Part shown: one piece after another, positions 47,201 through 63,856 of the stretch
Numbering within the stretch: the first letter of the stretch is position 1
Layout of the letters: each line of letters starts with the position of its first letter
DNA from: Bispira polyomma
Lineage: Eukaryota
Assembly (NCBI GenBank): GCA_965649765.1
Contig: OZ287752.1
Coordinates: 58,404,001-58,468,000, forward strand
Length of the DNA: 64,000 nucleotides
Direction of reading: 5' to 3'
Notes under the pieces: model-generated
What the model was told of the DNA's origin: nothing
The model's database searches: none
The model's input: only the letters and a program-made list of their open reading frames with translations
Program-made: the position numbers and the translations under genes

Positions 47201-50200
47201 ATGTTTTTATTTAACAGATACTGTAAAATCGTTTTGTAATATTTTTCAAGTCATATGTTTTTTTTATCAAGTTAAGATTTAGCATTTATAGAATATGTGT
47301 TAAATAAGATCCATACATTAAGCTTTAATGAATGTTAAATATATATAGTGTAGAAGTATAAATCAGTGCAATTTTGAACTTTGTCATTTAACTCTTGTCA
47401 TTTCATGTAATGGGTTAACTAGAATTTCAGTCATTACGCAAAATGACTGCAAATTTTAGGCATTACATGCAGTAATGATTACACATATTAATTTTAACAT
47501 ATATAGATGTTTTTCTGTATTGTACATTTTGTGTTGTATACATTTTGCAGTGGGTAGCTTCAATTGACCTTTTTACTAATGAAAATGCTTCTGCAAATGT
47601 GGTTATTAACCCGGCTGAACCCTGGGAAAAACAAGAACAACAGGTTTGTTTGTCTTACAGTTTATTACTTTGATCTTGGTATTAAATTATGAAGTGAATT
47701 TGTATGGACTGGTATTTGGAATGATCAGCTGAACATGTGTTTGTGGAAGCCTTTACATATTATAGAGCAAGATGTAGCTTATGATTCTATAAACAAGTGT
47801 AAGACATTCTGTTTAAATACCTACATTCAAATTCAAGGAATTAATTGTTTAGAGATTAATTCTTAAAAATAGAATTCAGTTGTTATAGTTCTTGCAAGCT
47901 AGGTAAATACTCCCACTTTCTATGTTGAATCAGTTCATTTCCTTGCAATAAATATATAATAAATGTACATCAATGGAGCCACTTAGTCAAATGTAAGCTC
48001 AAAGCTTATACAGTAGAAACTTGATTATCTGAACATGTTAGGAGAGCCAGATTGTGTTCGGATGATAAAAGATTCATAAGTATAAAACAGAAGAGGCATT
48101 TGTCTGCAAATAATAGGAAAATATAAATTTGGGAGATTCGAAAGGAGTTCATAAGTTTGGATAATAGAAGTTCTACTGTATTGCTTCCGATAGGTGAGCC
48201 AAAAAGTTGAAGAAAGCCTGAGTGGAGAAAAGGTAGATGCAATTTTGTGTGTTGCTGGAGGATGGGCCGGTGGAAATGCTGATTCTAAAGGTAACACATA
48301 AAGTTATAGTACATGTATGTGAATAATCATAAAGTAACTACTGAAAATGATCTTACTGAAAGTTATGCCGAATATTACCGAAAATGGTCCAAAAAATGTG
48401 GTACAAATGTGGTTATTATTCTTTTGACGATAACATTTTTAGATAAATTTGACAAATTATGCATTATTCTATTTGTTATTTCACATGCAGAATAGGAAAC
48501 CAATTAGAAAACATGTAGTGACTTCATAAAGAGTTTTAACATTCGTTTCCTGCTTTATGTTGTAGGAATGAAGTTCAAGGGCGCATACTTTATTGGCGAG
48601 TAAAGGACTGAATTATGGCAAAATAATAGACAAGGTTAGGCTTGAGTCTATTATGTAGGAAGACTCCTTTATTTGCCAATAAAGTAGAAGCCTAGGTACT
48701 TTATTTATTTTAGAAAGACTGACAACAGTATTATTTAAAGCAAATAATAAGATATTTTCCAACTTACTGTGAACTATTTTTGTACTTACTGACGGAACTA
48801 TTTGTCCGTACTCTAATCTCCCAGATAAAGAAGGGCTACGAATTGCGCACTGATGGCTTTTGTGTTAGATGGACCCTTCCGGTCTTTCTAATGACTCATG
48901 TTATTGACTGACTTTAAAAACATAAATGCAAAAGTAGTTATAAAAATAAAAAATACCCATACTGTATTTATTGTATTTAAACGCACTTTATTGATGTGAG
49001 GCATCTTTTACTAAAAGCGCAACAACCGAATCAATTAACCAACCATAAATTCGAAACAACATATACTATATTTTACAATTTGTTTACTGTATATTTAACT
49101 GCTATATATATATAAAAATCACCATTTCTATAACCATTCTACTGATACATAGATATTAATGACCGTTTTTGCCATGACATTCATTTGGTAGTGTTTAGTA
49201 TGTACTGTACAGTAAGACCATGAAAGAAGCTTTAGCTTATTTATTACTACCTGTGACTTTGTAAGTAAAAAAACATAGTTTCCTTGAACATGTTATGCAT
49301 GTAATGTATAGGTAACATACTGGCTCCCACCTCTGCAGTTGTGGGTGTTGATATTTGAGTTTATGGTTAAAATCTCTATTAAAATGAATGGTCACAAATA
49401 TAGATTTTTTCCATGTACAATGATTTCCACATGGCCTGTATTTGAGTTGAGTATGAGTTTAAGCTGAGTATACGTTCGAGAATACCAGCCCAGGTGTTTA
49501 TGATGACATAGTTGGCCCAGCTTCAAGTTGCTCCACCAGTGAACTGTCTGTCTTGACATGACACAAGACGTGATTGAAAGTGACACTGAAAACCCAAACT
49601 CAATTAGAATTTATAAATGTTAAAGAGATTCCTTGTTCTTTGTTAACTTTTAGGGGCCCCAAAGGCCAAGTAGTTATAAGCATATGCTTTAAAATCACTG
49701 GCCTCTCACCTCTGGGGATCGAATCCCACAGAGTCATTCTTCATGTGAGAAAGTTTGTCAGATACTTGCTATAGGTCGGTGGTTTACAGTGCATGAGCAC
49801 TAGTTTCTCCACCACCAATGCTGGCCATCACAATTTGACTGTAGCTGTTGAAAAATCCCAAAATAAATTCAAATTCTGTGTAAACTTTAGATCTGGTAAA
49901 GAACAGCGATCTGATGTGGAAGCAGAGTGTGTGGTCTTCCACTATAGCTGCACACCTAGCCAGTAAACACCTAAAGGAAGGTGGTCTCCTTCAACTGACT
50001 GGGGCCCAGCCCGCACTCTCTAGTACCCCAGGTAAAAATTAAATGTAAATTTTTGGTTTATAGTCTGATATCACCTCTATTGAGGTATCAGCCGACTTTA
50101 CAGTTTACACCCCCAGCCAGGGTTGTTTCACTTATCAACCAATTGTTCATTCTCAGCTCCCTCAGGGAGCATACTAGCCATGCTGCCATATGTGGCGTAC

Positions 50201-53200
50201 AAAGACTAACACCCGTTAAGGGCCAAGTACCCATTTATACACCTGGGTAGAGAGGGACAACTTTGTGTAAAGCACCTTGTCCAAGGGTACAATCTCCAGG
50301 CCGCAGGCGAGGATCGAACCCTGGCTCTTAAGATCCAAAGTCCGACACACTAACCATTAGGCCACAGAGACCACAAAAGGTAAGAATACACTAATAAAAA
50401 ACACGGGGGATTTCTAGATTAAACTCAAGTGAAGACTATGTATGTAACTCCTGTAAAAGGAAATAACCTCTATTTGTGACTATTCATTTTGATAGAGCTT
50501 TTAGTACTGAATTTAAATGTGCAGTCAGATTTGATGTATATTCCCTATTCTATTTCTAGAGGTTGGCAGAGCTTAGATTTGATCTGAATTGAGCCAGAGG
50601 TATTTGGAGAAAACGTCTATAGGAATGGATTGTATTTTGCATTTTTAATGTGGCTCATTGATGTTAAGCATCTTCTAAGGCACAACAATAGAATCAATTA
50701 ATCAATTGAGAAGTCAAAAAACAACAACATAGCCACAATAATAACGAATAATGTGGTGGTTTACAGGGAGGGAATTAAGTGGGTTAAGTATTTTTTGCGA
50801 GAAGGCTCTTAGTAAAGCTACACCACACTAAATAAATAGATTATCTGGGGTGTGGTTCACAAAATATCTTAAGGGGCTATGAACGTAACCGCATAAACTG
50901 ATCACTGATAACTTCCACTTACACCTACGAAAATACAGCATTTTTCTGATGTTGAGACCTTAAAACTGGTTCCACTTATATCTAAATTCCACTTACACTG
51001 GTTCTACTTATACAGAGTCTACTGTATCTTCGTATGTGTTGGAGCAATACTCGTATTGTGTCATGATAGAAAGGGCTCTCTGTGAGAATTGTTTACAAAT
51101 ATGACATTCCCATATAGATTTTAAATTGTGTGACGTCACAATATAAGAATCATTATAGGACTGTTTTAATCACTTTGCAACAAAATAGTAAAGTTTTAAA
51201 TGGTATCTGCATATAAAAATGATTTATACGGTCACTAAAGAACCATTTTATGGATGCTGTATTAAGTATATGTACCAAAATGAAAATTTGTAAATGTAGG
51301 ATAATATTTGGGCAGCGCATTTATGGGTTTACATTCATAGCCTCTCAAGCTTAAGCTCAGACTTAAGTTCTCAGAATTTGTAAAGGGTTTTGACCAAATC
51401 AAACTTAAGTCTTGTCTGAAGTTGAAGACCTCTAGCAGGGTGATTTAAGACTAATTGTTGTGGTCTATCCCATATTTCTAAGATATTAAACATGATTCCT
51501 ACCAATTTATGTTTATAATTCTATATTGTATAGTACTACTACAGTATATTAAACCCAAAATTTAATCAAAATATTTGAAAATATATATTTAAGCTGAACT
51601 TTGTCTATGACGTGATTTCTTGCACCAAAATAGTCCTAAGTAGATAGCCCTGCTATTAATATATTGAACTATATGGGATTGTGACGTAATAAAAATGTGT
51701 GCTTTATGCACAATTACAGTTAGAAAAAGTATTTTTAAAATCTTATTTTAACTGGAATTCAAAATGGTACAGTTAAAGTCATTTTTTCCTAAATTTTTTC
51801 ATGGCAGTTTACGTGAATCAACTGATGACAAATCTTAGCCAATAAATCTGTCTGGTCCTAGTAGAATAGAGGCACTATATTTTTCTACCGCTCCCCTCCA
51901 AAAAAAACTCAAACACAAAAACAAACGATTAAAATCGGCATTGTGGTTTCATTTTGATGCCAAAAGAATTGGAATTGTTCAGCACCTCGAGATGTGTGAT
52001 CAATAAGGTGACATAAAAAGGGTGCATATATATGTACCGGTATGTGAATCTTTTCCAAATGTAACAATTCATAGCAGGCAAGATCCAGACCAAATCGCTT
52101 GACGTAAAGGTAGAGCATTGAAGATAGGTCAATGTCTTAATTAACTTCAGTGGATTGCTGGCTCCTATATGAAATATAGGAAAAAGCATGAAAAATGCTT
52201 CTGTTTCTGCAGACTGAGGATGTTCTAACTTGTAATTATCGAAGATTTGGAACCACGTTGGACTAATAACTGAGGATCTACTCTTACACCCAAAAAGTAA
52301 TAAGAAGTCGATAGTTGACCATAGTATTGGTTTGTATTTATGTCCATATTTTATAATCAAAGTTCCGTATAGGAGATTGTTTCCTTTTCTATGGTACTGA
52401 GGATCTACTCTTACACCCAAAAAGTAATAAGAAGTCGATAGTTGACCATAGTATTGGTTTGTATTTATGTCCATATTTTATAATCAAAGTTCCGTATAGG
52501 AGATTGTTTCCTTTTCTATGGTACCGGACTTCCTATTTCATTCTTGTAGTGAAGTTGTTATGTATATAGGATGTGCTGTAGGAGGATGTAAAATGGGTGC
52601 TAGGGTATGAATATTAAGCAAATTTACACTGTACAAGCTTGTGTTTATTGTATCTCTGGATCTCATACCTTGAAATATGTATACTGAGTTTCTGTGTTAT
52701 TATCTTAAATAATAATACAGTATAAACCCCTTTTGTTCAAACGTCTATTATCCATCCTCCCAGAATTATGTTTTCGTATTATTTTATGTATAAAAATGCT
52801 TCTCCTATGTCTACTATTCAAACCAGCTGTTGCTCTCCGAATATGTTTACATAATAGAGGTTCTACTGCATACACAGTAACACAGGTGGTCCAAAATTGC
52901 AACTACAGTTGAAACCCTTTACCCTTAACTTAAGTGACCACGATAAATGCTTTTACTTAAGCAGGAAGTCCACTTAACATGGTGTGTTTTAAAAGAAAAT
53001 GCCTAACTTAAAAATACTACGTTTCAATGTACACAAACAAATATAGAGAGCAACAAATAAATAACCAAAAATAATGTACAAAGTTTTTAATCTATTAAAT
53101 AAAGATTTTATTATGAACACTTTTTACATTGTGTCAGTACATGTGCAGTTGAAAGTGTGGAAGTATGGATATAATGTAGCACTGTAGCTTGTGAGTAGTC

Positions 53201-56200
53201 GTTTCCTGAGAGTTTTTGGTTTCCTCTGCCGTAGTCAGTTCTATTATTTCCTAGTATGTCGGGACTTAGGTATTATAATATTTAATACATCAATAAAGCA
53301 AATGAGGTTCTTTTTTCTTTTAAACGTTTTTTTGCAATTTGAATGGAAGCTACTACTTATATAAATATACTGGATATTTGAAAGAATGGCACATATAGTA
53401 GTAGAAATTCAAGTTTTTTAAACAAGTTTACACTTTGGGTAAGCTCCCAAAAAATTGTTCTTTAAACGACAACTTTTTAAACCAAACTCTCAGAATTATC
53501 TATCAGATACCTACATAATATCTGTCATCATTTCTTTGCTTAGGGACACTGTTTTTTTTGACAAAAACCTTTTTCTAGTTTAAATTAGTGTAAGTTTGAA
53601 CAATTATTGTTCTATTGCACTCCTTAAAGTCCAGGGGCTGTGCACAAAAGGGATCAACGAAAAATCAGCTAAAGTAGAGCCAAAACTCAGGATAAGTTAA
53701 GCCAAAAATTAGCTGAGCCAAAAATCAGCTCAAATTTTTGGATCGAATCAAATTTGGTATTCACTAAAAAGTTAAGCTGATTTTTCGCTCATCTTTTGGC
53801 TTAACTTTGATCTATCCATTTAGGTGGATCAAGATTTAGATCAAAGTTAGGAGCTTTGTAATATACAAACTAAGAATGCTTGCATAAAATAAATCCTTGG
53901 TAAACTATATCTGATTCTTTAACTTTACGTATGTCATTTAAGAGTAACTATTTACAGTTCTATGTTGGTTTAAATTGTTGTGAAAAGAGGCTATGTTTTG
54001 TGTATTTTTTGCAAGGATCAAAAGTGGATTGAGGTTCAGTTTTTCCATTGAATCAAAACATATTTAAAATATTCTTTTGCTTACAATAATCAACCTGATG
54101 CACAAAAATATACTTGTAATGGAAATATGTTCATATTACAGCTGTTTAAGATGTATAAAAAACTTAAACCTGTTTTTTTGTGGTTAATAATTATATAAAT
54201 TTTAGCTAGCTGATCCTTGCTTTGTGAGTACTGATTTGATCTAAAGATCAGCTGAGCCTTTTTTTTTAGCTGATATTCATCCTGAGCTGATTTTTCGCTC
54301 AGCTTGGTTTATCTTTGTGAATACGGGCTAAGATTGAAATGGTTAGTCAATTTTGTTCGCCAGTTAACCGTTTGAAGTCACCACCGAGTAACCGGTTAAC
54401 CTTGAACTGTATGTATACAGACTGATTCATATTACCACAACGTAAACTATCTACTGTGGGTTGTGTAAACACCTCAGTATAAACTATAATAAGGGGCTGT
54501 GAGATTTATAGCAGTTAACTGTTCTGACAGACCGGTTAACATTCTCGCAACCTATTACTTAAGTACTACGGTTAACCCTTTCAACCTTAATACTGGCGCT
54601 GTAATAAAAATTGGAAGTCTATAGTTGGCCATAGTATAGGTTTGTAGTTCGTGTTTTCTAACATTATTCACCTCATTTTATGAGTTTCCTTGCTATGGTA
54701 TCGGACTTCCACGCTTAATCTGTGTAATGCCTGTATATATACTGTGTCATAGTGTCGTTTTCAAGATTATGGGTGTAACTTTTTGAATATTTAACAGCAA
54801 TTTTATCTTTGGGTATTGTTATGTTTGGTATGTATTTGTTAATGTAATTATGATTCACCCCAAGAAAATGGTGTGTTGGTTAATAGAATTACTATTTTCT
54901 GAATATTCAATAAGTAGGGTCCCGTATCATGTTTTCGACGCACTGTATTGATTTTGTACTATTTTATGATAATGTATATTTTTATTAAGTACACCGAAAA
55001 CCCTAACGAACTTTATACTAATAATTCATTTTAAATAATTGAAGGATTTATAAAGCGCCAAAGTATAGAGTGCCGGTATTACATAATAAAATCGATAAGA
55101 AAATGCGGAAAATAAATGAAAATTCTTGAGTAACTTCTGTTTTCAAGTGACGCTGTGACCTTTTAGAGCTCCCACTTTAGAATTAATGTATTCAGAATAC
55201 TTGTAGCTTTACTATAACGCTGGAAAGTGGATGACTACGACAAAAAGGAAGTCTATAGTTGACCATAGTGCACTTTGTGATAAGTTACTTTATAAATATA
55301 TATTTTCCTCTAGTGTGAAGATTTCTTTACTATGGTGCCGGACATCCCAGTAGTTGCAGGAGTAATTCAGGAATTTATATACATTATGTGAAGGTGTTTT
55401 TGCATTATGGGTAACAGAGTTTGAATGTTGTGGCATGAATACCTTCTTTTGAATGTGGCAAAACAAGTGTTATCCAATTCTGATCATCCTGAAATTTTTA
55501 TATTATTATTTCATCCCATATCCCATTTTATGTCTTTTATATCAACTGTTTATTATTCAGGGAAACTGTCATCATCATTGTTCAAAATTGTTGAGTGCAG
55601 AAAAGATGCACATTTGATTTATGAAAATGTACTATCAGTAGCAGGATTTTTCCTGGTCAAAAATAGATCTATGTACCACATGGCTGCTGAGAACAGGGCT
55701 AATATTCCCAAGGTGTAATTCTTAAATTTTTATCTCAATTAATTTGATCAGTTGAAAATATTGTCTCAAAGAATTCGTTTGGCTGAGACTAAGAAAATTC
55801 TAAGAATTGCTTTCTAAGAATATGTTTGCCAATACGGCCCCAGATGTCTGTGTGGAAAGAAAAGAATTATTGTGAGAGCCTGTTGTCGAGGTACATTTTG
55901 TTTGTACCCTGTTTGTTCCTCCAGCACCATTCAGCTGAAAAAAGTGACAGTCAGGCTTAGGATAAAATAATATACATGTGAATCAAATTTGTTAAAGTAA
56001 ACGATACAGTTGGACCCCTTTAACTCGAACCTCAAGAGATCAGGAGAAATACCTCCACATAAGCAGGATTTCCACTTGACAAGGTCAATTTTAAAAGAGG
56101 AGGCTTTTGTGGGACTATCATATTTTTTGAATTTAGCCAAGTTTTAGGCTTAAATCTAGCACAAAAGTATTCTAGATTTAAGACTAAGACGTGGCTAAGT

Positions 56201-59200
56201 CCGTTAGTGAATACCGCCCCTGGACTTTAAAAGGAAGTCTATAATTGACCATAGTATAGGGATGTGTATGATTTTATATTTAAAATTTGTTTGTAATCAC
56301 TAAGTGACTATGTCTTTGTTATGGTACCGGACTTCCAAGTATTGGTTTGTTAAATTGATGAATTTATACTAGTAACCATCACACAGTTCATTTTTATGGT
56401 TTAGAAAGTTTGAATATTTATGTCAGTAATGCTTGTGCACTGACATTTTTTGTGTGACAAATTTAGTAAGTTTGTACAGGTAGTGTTTCAATTACATGTA
56501 GTAAGATTGACTTTACTTGTAACTGCCAGCTGTATTGGCAGGATTAATGTTCTAAAGTATTCTTATTAACTGTGTAATTGTATCCACCGATTAGGTGGAT
56601 ACTTTGGGTTTTTTACGCCGTCGCAGAGAGATTTTTGCCGTTAACACTCTCAGCGGAAAACTAGACCAGGTAGCTTCACCAAATTTGCAGGATATCTTAA
56701 TTGGGAGGTAAGCTTCTCTGCGACTGAAATAAACCTCATTCTGAAAAACAAAATGGCCGCCATCAGCATTTCTTTGAAAATGTTCCACCTTTTTCTACTG
56801 GCTGGTTCTCGTAACTAGAAGGTTAAATCTCTTCAAAGGTGATATGTATAACATATATATGTCCTCAACAAAAATGCAGACATTTGACCTTGAGGCTCTT
56901 CATTCAAGGTCATCCACGGAGTGCCAAAGTACCCCACATAGTGAACTTTAAAAGTGCCTATATCTCCCTTATTATTGGTCCAAGAAGTTTGGCATGTGAA
57001 GCCTACCTATAGAAAATCATGGGATGGGAATCTTCTGATGTGGTCAGGTTTGACCTTGGGCCCCTCATTCAAGGTCAAACAATGTATCCAAACTTGAAAG
57101 TGCTTATAACTCGCTTATTATTGGTCCTAGAGGTTTGCATTATGAAACCAACTTATAGGTAATCATGGGCTGGGAATCTTCTGATGTGGTCAGATTTTAC
57201 CTTGGGCCCCTCCATCAAGGTCAAATGGCAATAGCTAAACTTAAAAGTGACTATATCTCCCTTATTATTGGTCCTAGAAGTTTGGCATGTGAAGCCTACC
57301 TATAGGAAATCATGGGCTGGGAATCTTCTGATGTGGTCAGCTTTGACCTTGGGCCCCTCATTCAAGGTCAAACAAGGTATCCAAACTTGAAAGTGCTTAT
57401 AACTCGCTTATTATTGGTCCTAGAGGTTTGCATTATGAAACCAACTTATAGGTAATCATGGGCTGAGAATCTTCTGATGGGGTCAGATTTAACCTTGGGC
57501 CCCTCCTTCAAGGTCAGACGAGGGTAGCCATAGCTTGGCTGCTTCCTACCTAGGGTGCTCTGTCTTTCTGGTGGATACAAATATGCATTGGTTTTCTGAT
57601 GTGCTGGAGTCTAGTTAAGTATGTCTTCACCTATTAACACTTTTCTTTTTTTGGTGTATATTTTGTACTTTATTTTTGTACTCCTATTTCTTGTGGATTT
57701 TTGTGTTAGTCAAGGGTTAATACATAGTTCATATTGGGTGTGATTAAGTCAGTCAAATATTTATGTTGCAAGGAAAACTGAACACAAAACACAAGGTCAA
57801 CAAATTGACTATACCTTATTTTAGACCAAGTTTATTGTTGTCGTTTAGTGGCATTTCGTAGCCACTGACGACAGAGTGGTTACCAATCACAAAACTTATG
57901 AGGCACTCTATATACATCAATGTTACACTTAACTGAGTTGACAAATATTTTCAAACATATATGAAACACTGATTTAAACAGAAATACTGGGAGGTATTTG
58001 CTATATGTGCCTACAGATCATAAATATAAGTTAAAAACATTTAAGAAATAATAACACGTACTCATACTGTAACATAATCATATTTTTATGTATTTTAAAA
58101 ATTTCCGAAAGATATTCACCAAAGTTATAATTTTCTTTATATTTGCCAAAGTTATAATTTCTTTATCCATATAGTTATTTCATTTTTCAGATATTGACAT
58201 GTTATCCCATGTATGATATTTTTGCTTCATAATATTTTCTAAAGTTTTCTGGTTTGCAAATATAAATACGGCAATTAAAGACCAAATAAATTTAATTTTC
58301 AACATCGAAACTTGAATTTGAATTTGGATATTTAACATCCACTCTAGTACCTTTTAGTAGGTTATATTGGGACGGGTAGTTGGAAACACTGGAGGAAACA
58401 CTCAAGGTTCTGCAGAGAAACCAGCGGCCCACAGTAAGGAACTACCACCTTTCCCACATAGGCATCGACGGGATTCGAACTCATGCCGCCCAGAGGTGAG
58501 AGACCAGTGATTGTGAAGCGCAATGCTTGCTAACCACTAGGCCACTGCGGCCAACATCGAGACAACAAAGCTTACATATAACTTATAATATGACACCATT
58601 ACAAATCTATTCATACAATAGTACACTTTGTTCAATACAAAATGGTGGTAATGTTTTAAATATTAAAGAGATAAAATTTTGAAATACTTCTACACGGCAG
58701 ATGTTTGCAATTAGTTTTGATGTGAAAAGTGGGTTTGATTTCACAAACTTCGAAAAATAAAATCAATAAACTCAAATCTGTTCAAGTAAACGATAGAGTT
58801 GAACCCCTTCAACTCGAACCTCAAGGGAATGAAAGGATTAGGAGAAACACCTCTACTCATAAGCTGGATTTCCACTTACCAGGGTATATTTTAAAAGAGA
58901 AGGATTTTGTGGGACAACAGTGTTTTCTCCGCATAAAAGAGAATCAACTTAACAGTGTTCTACTTATAATTAAGGGTTCTGACTTTTAATTTATTTAAAT
59001 TATCTAATTTTTGTGCATCAGTTAATTCTGAAAACAGTTTACATACAATTTGAACTCCTTTAAGCAGAATCTCAAGGGACAAGGTCAAATATCTCTACTC
59101 AAGCAGGATTTTCACTTAACAGGGTAGATTTTAAAGAGAAAGCTTTTCTTGGACTACTATGTTTTTTGCACATAAAAGATAAATCGACTTAACAGACTTC

Positions 59201-62200
59201 TACTTAAAGGGGGTCAGTTTAATCTGAAAATAGTTTACTACAGTTTGGACTCCTTTAAGTAGAATCTCATGGGACAAGGTGAAATATCTACTTAAGCATG
59301 ATTTCCACTTAACAGGGTAGATTTCAACACTTTTGTAGGACTACAATTTTATAATTAAAAGGAAGTCTATGATTGACCATAGCATAGGGATGTGTATATA
59401 TTTATGTTTAACATTAGTTTCGTAATCACTAAGTGAATATGTCTTTGTTATGGTACCGGACTTCCAATTTTATATTTGTTAACTTGATGAATTTATACTA
59501 GTAACTGTCATGCAGTTCATTTTTATGGTTTAGAAAGTTTGAATATATAGGTCAGTAATGCTTATGCAGTTATTTTTTGTGTGACAAATTTATTTATCAA
59601 TTAGTAAGATTGACTTTTCCTTTAACTCCCAGCTATATTGGGAGAATAAATTTCCTAAAATATGCTTATTAACTGTATGAAAAAATGAATGAATAAATTA
59701 ATAAATCAAATAAACTGCCTGCAATAAGTAATAAGGATCCAATGATATTAAATTTAACTAATACTCTTATTTTTTGTAAGATTTTTTTTGATAGTCAAGG
59801 GTTAATATATAGTTGATATTGGGTATGATTAAGTTTGTTGAATATTTGTGTTGCAACAACAACTGAACATAAAACACAAGGTCAAAAAATTGACCATACT
59901 TTATGTTAGACCAAGGTTATTGTTCATATTTTGTGGTATTTTGTAGGCACTGGCGATAGAGTGGTTACCATTCACAAAACCTCAAAAAAAATCTAACATG
60001 GCTATTTTTCTATCTTCGGTATAATAAAAGTAAACATACATATATTTTCTATATAACTTTCTTTCGAAATGTTAATATTAGTGTCTATTTTATCATGAGT
60101 ATAAGTACTTACAGGTGGGGTAATATTAATTGTAATATTGTGCATGGTTATTGTGTATTCATTATTACAACCACAAACTATATGGTAAAGTGATAATTTT
60201 TTGCACGTTCTTGTACTATGACAGATTTGTGAAGTTTTGCAAACTCTGGTGGCTACAAAAACTACAAAACTGCGTCTAACCTCATTCATAAAACTTCTTA
60301 ATTTTTACTTTTAAAAATAACCCACTCGACGACAGTTAAATCAACATTATGATTACTTATTTTGGAATTAGTTTCTTTTCTCTTCAAAATGTTATTCTAT
60401 AATTTTACAATGCTGAAATTTATATGCTGTATATGTTAATAAATATGTGTATGGAAAACTAATTTTCATACACACAATATGTACAAGAGAAAGGCTATGA
60501 TTGGCCATAATGCAGAGATGAGGGTATTTTATGTTTAAACATTATTCTTTAATCACTAAGTGAGCTTTCCTTATTATGGTACCAGACTTCCAGTTAATGT
60601 TTGCTCTGCTATGTGTATTTATACTAGTACATACTGCACAGCTCATGGTTATGGTTTGTAGGGTTTGAATATTTATAGTACAATCACACTAGTTTGTCAA
60701 TACTTGTACTCGTTGTTTTAATACAAAACTGCTTTCTACTAAATGGTTACAAAACATGGACTTCACAGACCATAGGAAGTATTCACAAAAGGGCTAAGTC
60801 TAGACATTGACTTAGATCTAGTGTACTTTTGTGCTACATTTAGGACAATGTCTAGATTTACCCTTTTGTCAATACTGCCCCAGATGTTCTCTTGAAATGT
60901 TTAACTAATTTTTCTTCTAGTGTAGATTTTTTAGTGGGGATCCTATCTTCTGATTTGTTTAGTTTTGGAATCCGAACTAAACTTTCAGCCTCAAATAGTG
61001 TTAATTGTATAACAAAGCCCTTCAAATGCATTTCTCCAAAAAAAGTTTCTGTGAGAAGAACAGAAAAAGGGAAGTCAATAATTGACCATAGTGCACTGGT
61101 TTGTTAGCTTATTTATATTTCATTATTTCCGTTTGTGGAGATTTCTTTACTATGGTACCGGACTTCCATTATAGTGAGTAAAGTTGCACTAAATTATGTA
61201 CCATAAGAAGAACAATTTCCTACATTATGGTTGAAGTGGTTTGAATATAAGAAGAGGTATATATTTTTTCTTTTTTAAACCAGTTTAAAAATTTCCTGTA
61301 TTTGGGATGTTGGGTATTTAAAAATAGAATTTAAAATATTTGCAATAGATATATAAACACCTATACTAGGATATACCAGTATGTGTTTTTTTTTACCAGA
61401 AATCCTTGAGAAATTACTATATTCTAGAAATACACTTGTCTTCGATATAATATAAGACCAGACTCACCAGAGTAGGTTTCTACTTTTGATGATTTTTATT
61501 GTAATCTATCCGACACATCTTAAGGTTCAAATATTCCCCGAGTAGATAATACAGTCCAACCCCTTTAAGTAAAATTATCTGTTAAGTAGAAGTTATTTTA
61601 AGATGCCATTTAGTATATTTGTAATTGATGAAATTTACCCCGTTAAATGTAATAAATTTTCTGTGTTTCACAAGAATCAAAAGAAGTCTATAGTTGACCA
61701 TAACATGGGGTGTTTTTGTATTTCAAACATTTCTTTCTGTCACTTTGTGAGCTTGTCTTTGTTATGGTACCGGACTTCCATCTATTGTGATACCACTACA
61801 AATCCATTTATATAATAGTACACTTTGTTTAATGCAAAATGGTGGCAATGGTTTGAATAATTAAAGAGGTAAAAATTTTAATACTTCTGTGTGACAGATG
61901 TTCATGGAAAAGTATTTGCAAAGTATTAATTTTAAAAGTGGGTTTGATTTTACAAAGTATTCATATGAAAAGTGAAAGAAATTAACAAACGGTCTTTAAG
62001 TCTTAACTTAGTCTTCAGTTTAACTAATTAACTGATTAAGATAGACTGCATTTATACAAGTAAAATAACAATGGAAAAATTGAGTATGTGACAAGCATCA
62101 GTATATATCTAATCAGTTAGTAACATTTATTGCTTGCTGTAGTAACATTCATTGCTTGCTATTTGTCTAGTGTATACTGGTATTTGTCGTGACAGACATT

Positions 62201-63856
62201 CCAATGTAACAAGATTTGAAATTTTGTCGACCGAATGTTTATTGGCAAGCAGTCAACACTCCAAAAATATTATTTTATTTTCCTTCAGTTCCTCGTTATA
62301 GGAAATTGTTAGTACAGCAGATTTCCCCGTTTTAAAAGTTATATTCGAGGTAGTTATTAATTGCCAGCAGTAGTGTGTGGTGTATTTTTTAGTGACTTTA
62401 TCTTTGTGTATTAACCTATTGCCGAAAAATCTCATTTCAGTTTCCGTCAGTTTTTCTCCCAGTCGCGAAAGTGTTAATAGAAAACAGTGGGTGAGCTGTT
62501 AAGAAAGCATTTCCTGTGTATTCGTGTTTGTGGCTATGGTACAGTAAAACCTCTATTTTACGGACATCTTGGAAGAGTGAGAATTTGTTTGGATAATATA
62601 GAAGGTCCGTAAAATATAAGTAGCATTTTAGTAGAAAGCAATAGTGAATATTTTGATAATAGATGGTCGGATAATAGAGGTTCTACTGTACTTATGTTTT
62701 AGGGGGTTATGTTACCAGTCACTGGCTCTCTAGGTCAGTGTTGTTTACTAATGACTATTCATCTTGTTTTGTCAGGTATGATTGGCTATGGCATGGCAAA
62801 GGCTGCAGTACACCAGCTGGTAAAAAGTCTGGCTGCTGAAAATTCTGGTTTACCAAAAGATGCATTTGTGGGTGCAATATTACCGTAAGTATTCGTCAGA
62901 TGGTAGAATGTCAATGTGCAGGAATGAAAGTTTAACTCAGTATGTCAATAACATTTTGCAACCCAGGAAAGAATATCTCAGGTCGAGGGACCTAACTAAC
63001 TACCTACATTAGAACCTTTCTTATACAAAGTCCTGTTATCCATTTATTTAATTTGTTGAACTCAATTTCCCTCTCCCAACTTAAATAAATAAGTTTCAAT
63101 AAGGGGAATGCCAGTTACTGGGGCTTGTTGGCTGTACTTGAGCAGTCAGGAAAACGTTAATTAGCACTTTGAATACCAGATAAAGATATATGAATAAATT
63201 TAAACAAAATATAATACAAGTATCATCTTTGTGAAATTTTGAAATATGTGATTGCCAAAAGGCGTGTCCACACTTTTTTTACCAATGACTACAATTGGGC
63301 AAGATGTCTACAAGTAGTGACTCGGATGACCACTTAAAATGCGATCGTCTGTCACTGGGTCCTATCCCCAGTGGCAGGCTAGAGATCCTTGGGGACGTTG
63401 ATAAACAGTCATCATCAAGCCTCTCTCTTCAGCTAGGGGAATGACAGTAACTGATGCAGTTGACTGTTAAGAGTTAGAGAAGGTCTATGCAAATACCAGA
63501 TGACGGTAGATAATTCACCGAGTATAAATATGAATACAAATTGCTAGGCAAGCGCCAGTTTATCAGATACAGTCAAACCACTTTTAAGTAGAATTCTGAT
63601 AAGTGGAATTACCTGTGAAGTACAAGTTATTTTTAGGTCCCATTGCTTTATTTATAATTAAATTTTACCCTGTGAAGTAGAAGTTCTGTTAAGTAGAACA
63701 AATTTTGATGGTCCCCTCAGATTCGACTTAACAAGGTTGCACTGTATTTTGTTTTTGTGACTATTTGTACAGGGTGACATTGGACACTCCTAATAACAGG
63801 AAGTGGATGCCCGAGGCTGACCACTCGTCCTGGACACCATTACAGGAAGTGGCAGA
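44200..63856 (+). CDS. QDPR: Dihydropteridine reductase (quinoid), exons 1-6, 3'-partial
   Basis: [17 protein letters not shown] / WVASID / [14 protein letters not shown] / [11 protein letters not shown] / [15 protein letters not shown] (YxxxK) / [20 protein letters not shown]; all splice phases are compatible. Confidence 0.97.
45047..45453 (+). mobile_element. MULE (ZSWIM3-like) transposase remnant in QDPR intron 1
   Basis: [22 protein letters not shown]...[24 protein letters not shown]...[16 protein letters not shown]; CxxH motif, three in-frame stops. Confidence 0.8.
47551..47643 (+). CDS. QDPR: QDPR exon 2
   Basis: [31 protein letters not shown]. Confidence 0.95.
48008..48180. mobile_element. 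MITE (CAGTAGAA family) 13 nt upstream of QDPR exon 3
   Basis: tacagtagaaacttgattatc...ggataatagaagttctactgta. Confidence 0.85.
48194..48290 (+). CDS. QDPR: QDPR exon 3
   Basis: [32 protein letters not shown]. Confidence 0.95.
49652..49875 (+). mobile_element. Older related SINE copy ending just upstream of the QDPR exon 4 acceptor
   Basis: ggccaagtagttataag...aatcactggcctctcacctctggggatcgaatccc. Confidence 0.65.
49891..50031 (+). CDS. QDPR: QDPR exon 4
   Basis: [46 protein letters not shown]. Confidence 0.96.
50110..50372 (-). mobile_element. tRNA-headed SINE with CORE-like central domain (family 2)
   Basis: Minus strand: tggcctaatggttag...ggttcgatcc...cccttggacaaggtgcttta...cccaggtgtataaatgggtac. 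Confidence 0.75.
52292..52397 (-). pseudogene. 5'-truncated, promoterless duplicate of small RNA copy A
   Basis: Product of an exact 127-bp tandem duplication (52271-52397 = 52398-52524); lacks the 5' GGAAGTCCG. Confidence 0.75.
52419..52533 (-). ncRNA. Y-RNA/sbRNA-like Pol III small RNA, copy A
   Basis: GGAAGTCCGGTACCATAG...CTATGGTCAACTATCGACTTCT-TATTAC-TTTTT; upstream elements at conserved spacing. Confidence 0.72.
52558..52612 (-). promoter_or_regulatory. Type-3 Pol III promoter (PSE-like + TATA) of copy A
   Basis: ATTCATA at -79..-73, CCCATTT at -64..-58, TATATACATAA at about -35..-25. Confidence 0.65.
53634..54328. mobile_element. Harbinger-like MITE (GGG..TATTCACAAA TIR family); related pieces at about 55790-55842, 56135-56222 and 60775-60881
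   Basis: ggggctgtgcacaaaag ... ctttgtgaatacgggc with internal inverted aaaaatcagct repeats. Confidence 0.6.
54329..54590. mobile_element. hAT-like MITE with repeated CGGTTAACC
   Basis: Ends taagattgaaa / tttcaacctta; several ccggttaac subterminal motifs. Confidence 0.5.
54606..54710 (-). ncRNA. Y-RNA/sbRNA-like Pol III small RNA, copy B
   Basis: GGAAGTCCGATACCATAGC...CTATGGCCAACTATAGACTTCC-AA-TTTTT. Confidence 0.72.
54734..54788 (-). promoter_or_regulatory. Type-3 Pol III promoter of copy B
   Basis: ATTCAAA at -78..-72, CCCATAA at -63..-57, TATATATA at about -31..-24. Confidence 0.7.
55242..55347 (-). ncRNA. Y-RNA/sbRNA-like Pol III small RNA, copy C
   Basis: GGATGTCCGGCACCATAGT...ACTATGGTCAACTATAGACTTCC-TTTTT. 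Confidence 0.7.
55374..55426 (-). promoter_or_regulatory. Type-3 Pol III promoter of copy C
   Basis: ATTCAAA at -79..-73, CCCATAA at -64..-58, TATAAA at -32..-27. Confidence 0.75.
56229..56336 (-). ncRNA. Y-RNA/sbRNA-like Pol III small RNA, copy D
   Basis: GGAAGTCCGGTACCATAAC...CTATGGTCAATTATAGACTTCC-TTTT; has one internal T4 run. Confidence 0.68.
56363..56415 (-). promoter_or_regulatory. Type-3 Pol III promoter of copy D
   Basis: ATTCAAA at -79..-73, ACCATAA at -64..-58, TATAAA at -32..-27. Confidence 0.75.
56578..57616 (+). mobile_element. HINE-like element with four alternating ~146-bp units
   Basis: Subterminal inverted repeats tgtatccacc/ggtggataca, 3' hairpin, CTAGTT end; absent from the paralogous segment upstream of copy E. 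Confidence 0.75.
58312..58551 (-). mobile_element. tRNA-derived SINE (family 1) with TSD
   Basis: Reverse complement of the same family; TSD caacatcga(a/g)ac. Confidence 0.9.
58610..58661 (-). promoter_or_regulatory. Orphan, decayed copy of the copy-H promoter with no RNA gene downstream
   Basis: About 58590-58750 aligns with about 61787-61953, with mutated TATA (TATGAA) and ATTTAAA. Confidence 0.6.
59357..59465 (-). ncRNA. Y-RNA/sbRNA-like Pol III small RNA, copy E (paralog of D)
   Basis: GGAAGTCCGGTACCATAAC...GCTATGGTCAATCATAGACTTCC-TTTT. Confidence 0.72.
59492..59544 (-). promoter_or_regulatory. Type-3 Pol III promoter of copy E
   Basis: ATTCAAA at -79..-73, ACCATAA at -64..-58, TATAAA at -32..-27. 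Confidence 0.75.
60485..60591 (-). ncRNA. Y-RNA/sbRNA-like copy F (degenerate, possible pseudogene)
   Basis: GGAAGTCTGGTACCATAAT...ATTATGGCCAATCATAGCCTTTC; bulged C changed to T, lower stem disrupted, no adjacent T4; promoter intact. Confidence 0.55.
60618..60670 (-). promoter_or_regulatory. Type-3 Pol III promoter of copy F
   Basis: ATTCAAA at -79..-73, ACCATAA at -64..-58, TATAAA at -32..-27. Confidence 0.72.
61064..61167 (-). ncRNA. Y-RNA/sbRNA-like Pol III small RNA, copy G
   Basis: GGAAGTCCGGTACCATAGT...ACTATGGTCAATTATTGACTTCC-C-TTTTT; carries the Y-RNA-type GUCCG/UUGAC pair. Confidence 0.74.
61194..61246 (-). promoter_or_regulatory. Type-3 Pol III promoter of copy G
   Basis: ATTCAAA at -79..-73, ACCATAA at -64..-58, TACATAA at -33..-27. 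Confidence 0.7.
61679..61779 (-). ncRNA. Y-RNA/sbRNA-like Pol III small RNA, copy H
   Basis: GGAAGTCCGGTACCATAAC...GTTATGGTCAACTATAGACTTC-TTTT; compensatory AAC/GTT in the upper stem. Confidence 0.72.
61807..61858 (-). promoter_or_regulatory. Type-3 Pol III promoter of copy H
   Basis: ATTCAAA at -79..-73, ACCATTT at -64..-58, TATAAA at -33..-28. Confidence 0.72.
62776..62884 (+). CDS. QDPR: QDPR exon 5
   Basis: [37 protein letters not shown]. Confidence 0.96.
63568..63746. mobile_element. Second TA-flanked MITE family (TACAGT...TTAAGTAGAA)
   Basis: tacagtcaaaccacttttaagtagaat...attcgacttaacaaggttgcactgta; related copies at about 23999-24172, 52905, 56006, 58795, 59045, 59238 and 61550. Confidence 0.75.
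63773..63856 (+). CDS. QDPR: QDPR exon 6
   Basis: [27 protein letters not shown]. Confidence 0.96.

Follow-up and report, generated by a model that had tools for sequence, protein, structure and literature searches.

What are the eight short, similar units that lie antisense in a single intron of the dihydropteridine reductase (QDPR) gene of the worm Bispira polyomma? They are found in a stretch of 64,000 nucleotides (assembly GCA_965649765.1, contig OZ287752.1, positions 58,404,001 to 58,468,000 of the forward strand), referred to below as the window, and had been singled out from its letters as a cluster of small RNA genes transcribed by RNA polymerase III (Pol III) and resembling Y RNAs and stem-bulge RNAs (sbRNAs). 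The analysis presented here favors the view that they belong to an expanded and diverged Y RNA/sbRNA-like family, whose Pol III transcripts would be bound by La and by Ro60, a protein of RNA quality control.

The host had been correctly identified as QDPR intron 4 (50032-62775, plus strand), located between coding exon 4 (about 49891-50031) and coding exon 5 (about 62776-62884). Matching was done exon by exon: exon 4 is similar to proteins named dihydropteridine reductase, and the translations of the flanking exons carry dihydropteridine reductase motifs. A full-length QDPR search gave vertebrate matches. The eight units, about 100-115 nt long and on the minus strand, begin exactly at the eight +1 positions of the original prediction (genes 1 to 8, Table 1). 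Indeed, their 17-mer 5′ motif is found eight times in the window with 0-2 mismatches, against 0.11 matches by chance, and each time the 3′ motif follows 97-104 nt downstream, so that the shared ends described earlier are present in all eight copies. As also described, seven units end at a run of four or five T; the exception is the copy starting at 60591 (gene 6), where such a run comes only about 30 nt further on. Mean pairwise identity is 88% in the 5′ stem, 82% in the 3′ stem, and 58% in the loop, which is variable and A-rich (35-54% A), as had been noticed. Upstream, it is 70% in the proximal sequence element (PSE) and 65% in the TATA box, vs. 39-47% in spacers and flanks. Conservation is therefore punctate, high in stems and PSE and at background in the spacers, a pattern unlike that of drifting repeats.

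Which polymerase would transcribe these units? The motif ATTCAWA-N8-MCCAT matches perfectly just eight times in the 64 kb, once ahead of every unit (-79/-60). Allowing one mismatch gives 10 matches in the window, for 3.2 expected. A TATA-like box is located near -32, weak at 52533 and 61167. Both U6atac genes of the same genome have ATATTCAAA at -81, CCCAT at -64, and a TATA box near -32, that is, the same blocks with the same spacing. U6 has ACCAT at -64 and TATATAA at -32, and a genome pattern scan places the PSE pattern 79 nt upstream of an RNase MRP copy (C1:88336881). In the U2 genes, the CCATA block is nearer the start, as expected for Pol II small nuclear RNAs. Internal A and B boxes were looked for in the family units and not found. 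Because their promoter is that of U6atac, U6, and MRP and the internal boxes are absent, the units can be classed by sequence as type-3 Pol III genes, and the promoter spacing predicts a start at the first G. The type-3 promoter that had been proposed, with three upstream motifs at fixed distances and weak conservation between them, agrees well with these data.

The same promoter elements also occur elsewhere in the genome. The 24-nt PSE pattern has 519 matches, vs. 17 for a reversed control. Many of them sit in dispersed repeats (one pair shares 1.2 kb at 92%) that combine PSE and TATA with a brief stretch downstream, in many cases closed by a T run, and with a G+C-rich hairpin about 200 nt further; these are possibly a transposon family with a type-3 Pol III promoter. 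Two PSE and TATA units at C1:14081049 and 14084089 reach a T6 run within about 25 nt, and may either produce very short Pol III transcripts or represent genes in decay. As for the reference genes, U6 forms a tandem array of about 45 copies with a 702-bp period (C1:64682093-64713083), U2 forms one of 45 or more copies with a period of about 1.3 kb (C11:29516668-29638583), and the two U6atac genes are in tandem at C3:16.27 Mb.

Is the cluster the whole family? The eight units in the intron stand as predicted, but the idea of a single intronic cluster does not. A first model, built from the eight window copies as the original prediction had advised and run over the genome, found further members, and all the full-length ones examined have the same promoter. 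A second model (R2), built from 17 sequences and run likewise, gave 28 matches, a lower bound: nine in the window, 17 elsewhere (E 1.1e-4 or better), and two weaker ones. At least 17 more copies are thus carried by six chromosomes (C1, C2, C4, C5, C7, and C8), where usually two to four sit together, and the PSE is present in all 11 of these 17 that were read. A sister subfamily of seven copies (C1:14849169-14852922, about C1:14.85 Mb), found via its promoter and not via its RNA, scores 20-29 bits with the family model and reads GGUUUGA/UUAACC. In this subfamily a bulged U replaces the C, the AUGC/GCGU upper stem recalls the sbRNA motif, and two copies look decayed. Two further PSE and TATA loci, C1:14629446 and C1:16318806, have a 5′ end like that of the sister subfamily and no 3′ stem, and lie in a duplicated segment of about 2 kb. 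Altogether, the family would comprise about 30 genes.

Within the window, the family can be seen both gaining and losing genes. Genes 4 and 5 have 165 nt in common, at 88%, gene 1 has a clipped duplicate, an orphan promoter is left behind, and gene 6 is probably decaying, having lost C8, one stem pair, and the terminator. With copies arising and degrading through local duplication, the QDPR intron would be no more than a landing site and the location is probably incidental. Depth in DNA runs is single-copy over the units, vs. about 1e6 over an adjacent repeat resembling a short interspersed nuclear element (SINE), and no consistent target site duplication (TSD) was found at the units. The three runs that cover the stretch are DNA-like sets of contigs from a single study, and a search for an RNA run covering it found none; differences in one contig over gene 5 resemble a mixture of paralogs and were set aside. 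At C11:53478114, a promoterless copy of about 70 nt of the 5′ part of gene 3 lies beside a G run, a retro- or repair-inserted fragment.

The ends of the RNAs pair with each other. Across 17 members, 89.9% of the stem cells are paired and nine of the 18 stem pairs show two-sided changes, such as A-U to G-C at pair 4, A-U to U-A at pair 15, and A-U to G-C, C-G, or U-A at pair 17. The covariation score (0.339) is above all controls (0.158 shuffled, at most 0.146 slid), and the stem is retained, with other bases, in two copies left out of the model. The end-to-end stem is maintained via compensatory changes. It has a 7-bp lower stem and an upper stem of 6-8 bp (ACCAUA/UAUGGU), and to this extent the geometry proposed at the outset is correct. 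Its single bulged C holds only in part. For the corresponding register, G9 must form a pair with the nucleotide immediately 5′ of GAC; this is possible in four of the 17 members, and since G9 faces an A in the 13 others, it is not the usual state. C8 is unpaired in seven of the eight window copies. Instead of a bulge of about 5 nt on the 3′ side, a better register places C8 opposite three unpaired bases (a 1x3 loop), followed by a 3-bp helix and then a 2-nt 3′ bulge, with G9-Y pairs in 16/17, R10-Y in 13/17, and U11-A in 15/17 members. An almost invariant U, located two bases ahead of GAC, is able to pair with either G10 or A10. Genes 1, 2, and 7 populate the Y-like register, and in some copies both registers are populated, so that the bulge region may switch registers or open on Ro60 binding. 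Finally, a small hairpin at about nt 28-42 is found in all eight window copies (individually p 0.007-0.22), and most dispersed members are devoid of it.

The resemblance to Y RNAs is carried by the ends. Six to seven of the eight window copies have RGUCCGR, and their 3′ strand reads CAAYYAUNGAC. In Xenopus, Ro60 contacts GGUCCGA, mainly on the 5′ strand (PMC4201824), and separates the helix (PMC12135203). In Caenorhabditis elegans, primers show GGUCCGA/UUUGACC for CeY and, for most sbRNAs, GGUCCGG with the 3′ strand CAACUUGAC (PMC8477234). One worm paralog, C1:39307557, has the canonical GGUCCGA/UUUGACC helix and is the sole one with the exact GGUCCGA. Other hallmarks are missing, as the original prediction had said of the vertebrate GUG/CAC motif and of the pyrimidine-rich loop: among the 17 members, none has the upper-stem GUG-CAC or the sbRNA upper-stem motif (UG-CA, A/GUG-CAC/U), and UUAUC is found in the loop of one, at mid-loop. 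The replication activity of Y RNAs needs the upper-stem GUG-CAC/UG-CA and loop UUAUC motifs, and CeY is devoid of the upper-stem features (PMC4450293). Because these motifs are absent here, a role in the initiation of DNA replication is unlikely.

Does the worm have the protein partner? The genome contains an intact, single-exon Ro60 gene, a check also suggested with the prediction. It encodes 552 amino acids with TROVE and vWA_Ro60 domains (E 2.6e-178 to Xenopus Ro) and keeps the D-x-x-R-x-x-H segment, including the equivalent of H187, reported as essential for Y RNA contact. Together with the matched CeY and sbRNA end motifs and the canonical paralog, this protein is in line with the proposed Y-RNA-like identity. 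In a one-gene tree, the worm Ro60 groups with siboglinid annelids (95/98 support), so that the supposed lophotrochozoan host is probably an annelid. A second, multi-exon TROVE-domain gene, possibly TEP1-like, is located at C6:61856408-61866062; no solved relative was found for one of its exons.

Taken together, each unit would be an independent Pol III gene of a Y RNA/sbRNA-like family. SNAPc would bind the PSE (-81 to -57) and TFIIIB the TATA box (-32). As the identity with the U6atac, U6, and MRP promoters suggests, Pol III would start at the first G and stop in the run of four or five T, yielding an RNA of about 100-115 nt. The RNA ends would pair into the 7-bp lower stem, the unpaired C8, a short helix, and the 6-8 bp upper stem. 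On vertebrate and nematode precedent, La would be bound to the 3′ U tail and Ro60 to the GUCCG(G/A) strand. The RNA may then gate the access of Ro60 to misfolded RNAs, as CeY and vertebrate Y RNAs do, and the variable A-rich loop may tether other proteins. We are highly confident that this is a functional family of Pol III RNAs and consider its descent from Y RNAs/sbRNAs very likely. That most members bind Ro60 is fairly probable, by analogy, and we give about the same credit to the full picture of an expanded, diverged, Pol III-transcribed, and Ro60/La-bound family.

Several observations weigh against this picture. Neither the window, nor single units, nor the canonical paralog, nor the sister subfamily gave a relevant Rfam match, even at E 10, and the Y RNA model RF00019 had no match over the whole genome; that standard models might miss the family had been anticipated. 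Most members do not form the canonical bulged helix, and some C4 copies have AGCCG in place of GUCCG. The sbRNAs of C. elegans, which carry GUCCGG as most units do, are absent from immunoprecipitates of ROP-1, its Ro60 (PMC4726728). Since nearly all animals have Ro60, finding it here says little, and the covariation counts overstate the number of independent events since the paralogs are related. Lastly, the family is known here from the DNA sequence of one genome alone.

The absence from ROP-1 immunoprecipitates leads to a rival explanation, in which the RNAs are sbRNA-type homologs, descended from Y RNAs, that for the most part act via a protein other than Ro60, as proposed for nematode sbRNAs, perhaps with the canonical-helix paralogs as the only Ro60 ligands. 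GUCCGG and CAACU..GAC do match the nematode sbRNAs, about 30 genes in mini-clusters resemble the 18-19 sbRNAs of C. elegans, and neither the opened 1x3 loop nor the GGUUUGA subfamily follows the Ro60 consensus. We nevertheless think it unlikely, given that the sbRNA-defining upper-stem UG-CA and loop UUAUC are absent and that the Ro60-contact 5′ strand is the most conserved part (88%). The likeness to Y RNAs could also be convergent, in a separate class of type-3 Pol III RNAs devoted to another protein, for example the second TROVE-domain protein (C6:61.86 Mb) or the vault. The common motif is, after all, just 5-7 nt long and nothing scores in Rfam. Against such a coincidence, which appears improbable, the motif, its position at nt 5-10, its 3′ partner, the length, the promoter type, and the terminator are all as in Y RNAs/sbRNAs, and no internal A or B box is present, unlike in vault RNAs. 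Vault RNAs themselves were rejected as an identity on the latter ground and for want of an Rfam vault match.

Non-functional repeats, either SINEs, retro-pseudogene copies, or miniature inverted-repeat transposable elements (MITEs), might be suspected from the 519 PSE matches, many of them in dispersed repeats, and from the existence of decayed copies. For a MITE, hundreds of copies with TSDs and without the fixed upstream motifs had been foreseen. About 27 copies were found, at single-copy depth, with an external promoter kept at a fixed distance while the spacers diverge to background, without consistent TSD or A/B boxes, and with compensatory changes in the stem; MITEs and SINEs were rejected accordingly and the repeat explanation, to which we attach very little probability, is already largely refuted. 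As all eight units are antisense in one QDPR intron, they might be regulators of QDPR or precursors of microRNAs acting on it. Twice as many members with the same promoter lie on other chromosomes, no exon complementarity is implied, and the long open loops are unlike those of microRNA precursor hairpins. We consider this most improbable, and both identities were rejected. Two other candidates were also set aside: spliced leader RNA, because of the TATA box and oligo-T and because there is no Sm-type layout, and telomerase RNA, the units being too short and having no conserved template.

Table 1. RNA genes, promoters, and related elements in QDPR intron 4 (window coordinates).
Feature	Position	Strand	Remarks
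Gene 1 tandem duplicate	52269..52397	-	127 bp, 100% identical; promoterless ninth copy, first ~9 nt gone; 59 bits
RNA gene 1	52419..52533	-	+1 at 52533; stem end 52430; T5 52419-52423; 88 bits with family model
Gene 1 promoter	52558..52614	-	PSE (-81..-57) and TATA-like box
RNA gene 2	54606..54710	-	GUCCGA variant; T5; fold z -3.7 vs. shuffles
Gene 2 promoter	54734..54790	-	PSE and TATA
RNA gene 3	55242..55347	-	T5
Gene 3 promoter	55372..55428	-	PSE and TATA
RNA gene 4	56229..56336	-	T4; recent paralog of gene 5
Gene 4 promoter	56361..56417	-	PSE and TATA
Orphan promoter	58586..58705	-	76% like gene 8 promoter; no RNA body behind
RNA gene 5	59357..59465	-	T4
Gene 5 promoter	59490..59546	-	PSE and TATA
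RNA gene 6	60489..60591	-	C8 to U, GAC to GCC, no adjacent T4; fold z +0.5 (no better than shuffles)
Gene 6 promoter	60616..60672	-	PSE and TATA, intact
RNA gene 7	61064..61167	-	T5; sole window copy with UUGAC on 3′ strand
Gene 7 promoter	61192..61248	-	PSE and weak TATA
RNA gene 8	61679..61779	-	T4
Gene 8 promoter	61804..61860	-	PSE and TATA

Other elements share the intron with these genes. The very high-copy, tRNA-headed SINE-like repeat occupies 58312-58552 (minus strand), about 30 nt past the +1 of the orphan promoter. A 293-bp tandem pair, 95% identical, lies inside a longer repeat at 56938-57516, and short hairpin-like inserts are found at 53694-53808, 56133-56198, and 60788-60867.

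Y RNAs have been described in vertebrates and nematodes, and candidates exist in two insects and in amphioxus (PMC4726728). They were searched for and not found in schistosomes (flatworms) and Trichoplax. Our literature search, with subscription papers mostly outside its reach, found no report of Y RNAs for annelids or molluscs. In seven environmental metagenome sequence sets, nothing scored with the 17-sequence model, and two pattern scans of metagenomes yielded either no match or matches treated as chance. The homologs of QDPR exon 4 that were followed up pointed to unrelated, compact genomes. The RNAs described here are candidates for the missing Ro60 partners of annelids and molluscs, and we lean slightly toward seeing in them the first annelid Y-RNA-family genes, 30 or more in number, with subfamilies that differ in the geometry of the Ro60 site (canonical, opened 1x3 loop, or U-bulged). 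If so, one Ro60 would be specialized through numerous RNA adaptors, or else certain subfamilies would have abandoned Ro60 in favor of a new partner. A spiralian family would open three questions to test: do all animals with Ro60 also have Y RNAs, is the canonical bulged helix required for Ro60 to bind, and is the replication motif common to vertebrate Y RNAs and sbRNAs an ancestral one? A search method is also gained, since the PSE of a species can reveal Pol III genes missed by Rfam.

How do the worm units compare with known RNAs? With vault RNAs, for which lophotrochozoan reports exist (PMC2770079), they share a length of about 100 nt, Pol III transcription (predicted for the worm units), and paired ends; their purely external promoter sets them apart. 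With vertebrate Y RNAs, they have in common the size, the clustered independent genes, the PSE and TATA promoter, the oligo-U end, and the GUCCG stem. In contrast, they have no RF00019 match and no GUG-CAC, their genes are many more, their loop is A-rich and not pyrimidine-rich, and C8 is usually in a 1x3 loop. Nematode sbRNAs are likewise a multi-gene set with individual Pol III promoters, 5′ GUCCGG, 3′ CAAC..GAC, and a variable loop. However, the worm units are devoid of the UG-CA upper-stem motif and of GC clamps, UUAUC occurs in 1/17 and at mid-loop, the 3′ linker is two bases longer than in CAACUUGAC, and the upper stem is ACCAUA/UAUGGU. Finally, CeY (yrn-1) is also about 100 nt long, with an unpaired C in a GUCCG lower stem, an oligo-U end, and no upper-stem UG-CA, and its helix is that of the C1:39307557 paralog. 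CeY is a single gene in C. elegans, vs. about 30 in the worm, where most copies have GUCCGG and, on the 3′ strand, AUAGAC. Binding of Ro60 has been demonstrated for CeY and is a prediction for the worm units. Thus, without any Rfam match and in the absence of GUG-CAC/UG-CA and UUAUC, the units fall outside RF00019 and the nematode sbRNAs as these are defined, yet they appear to be built like CeY-type Y RNAs.

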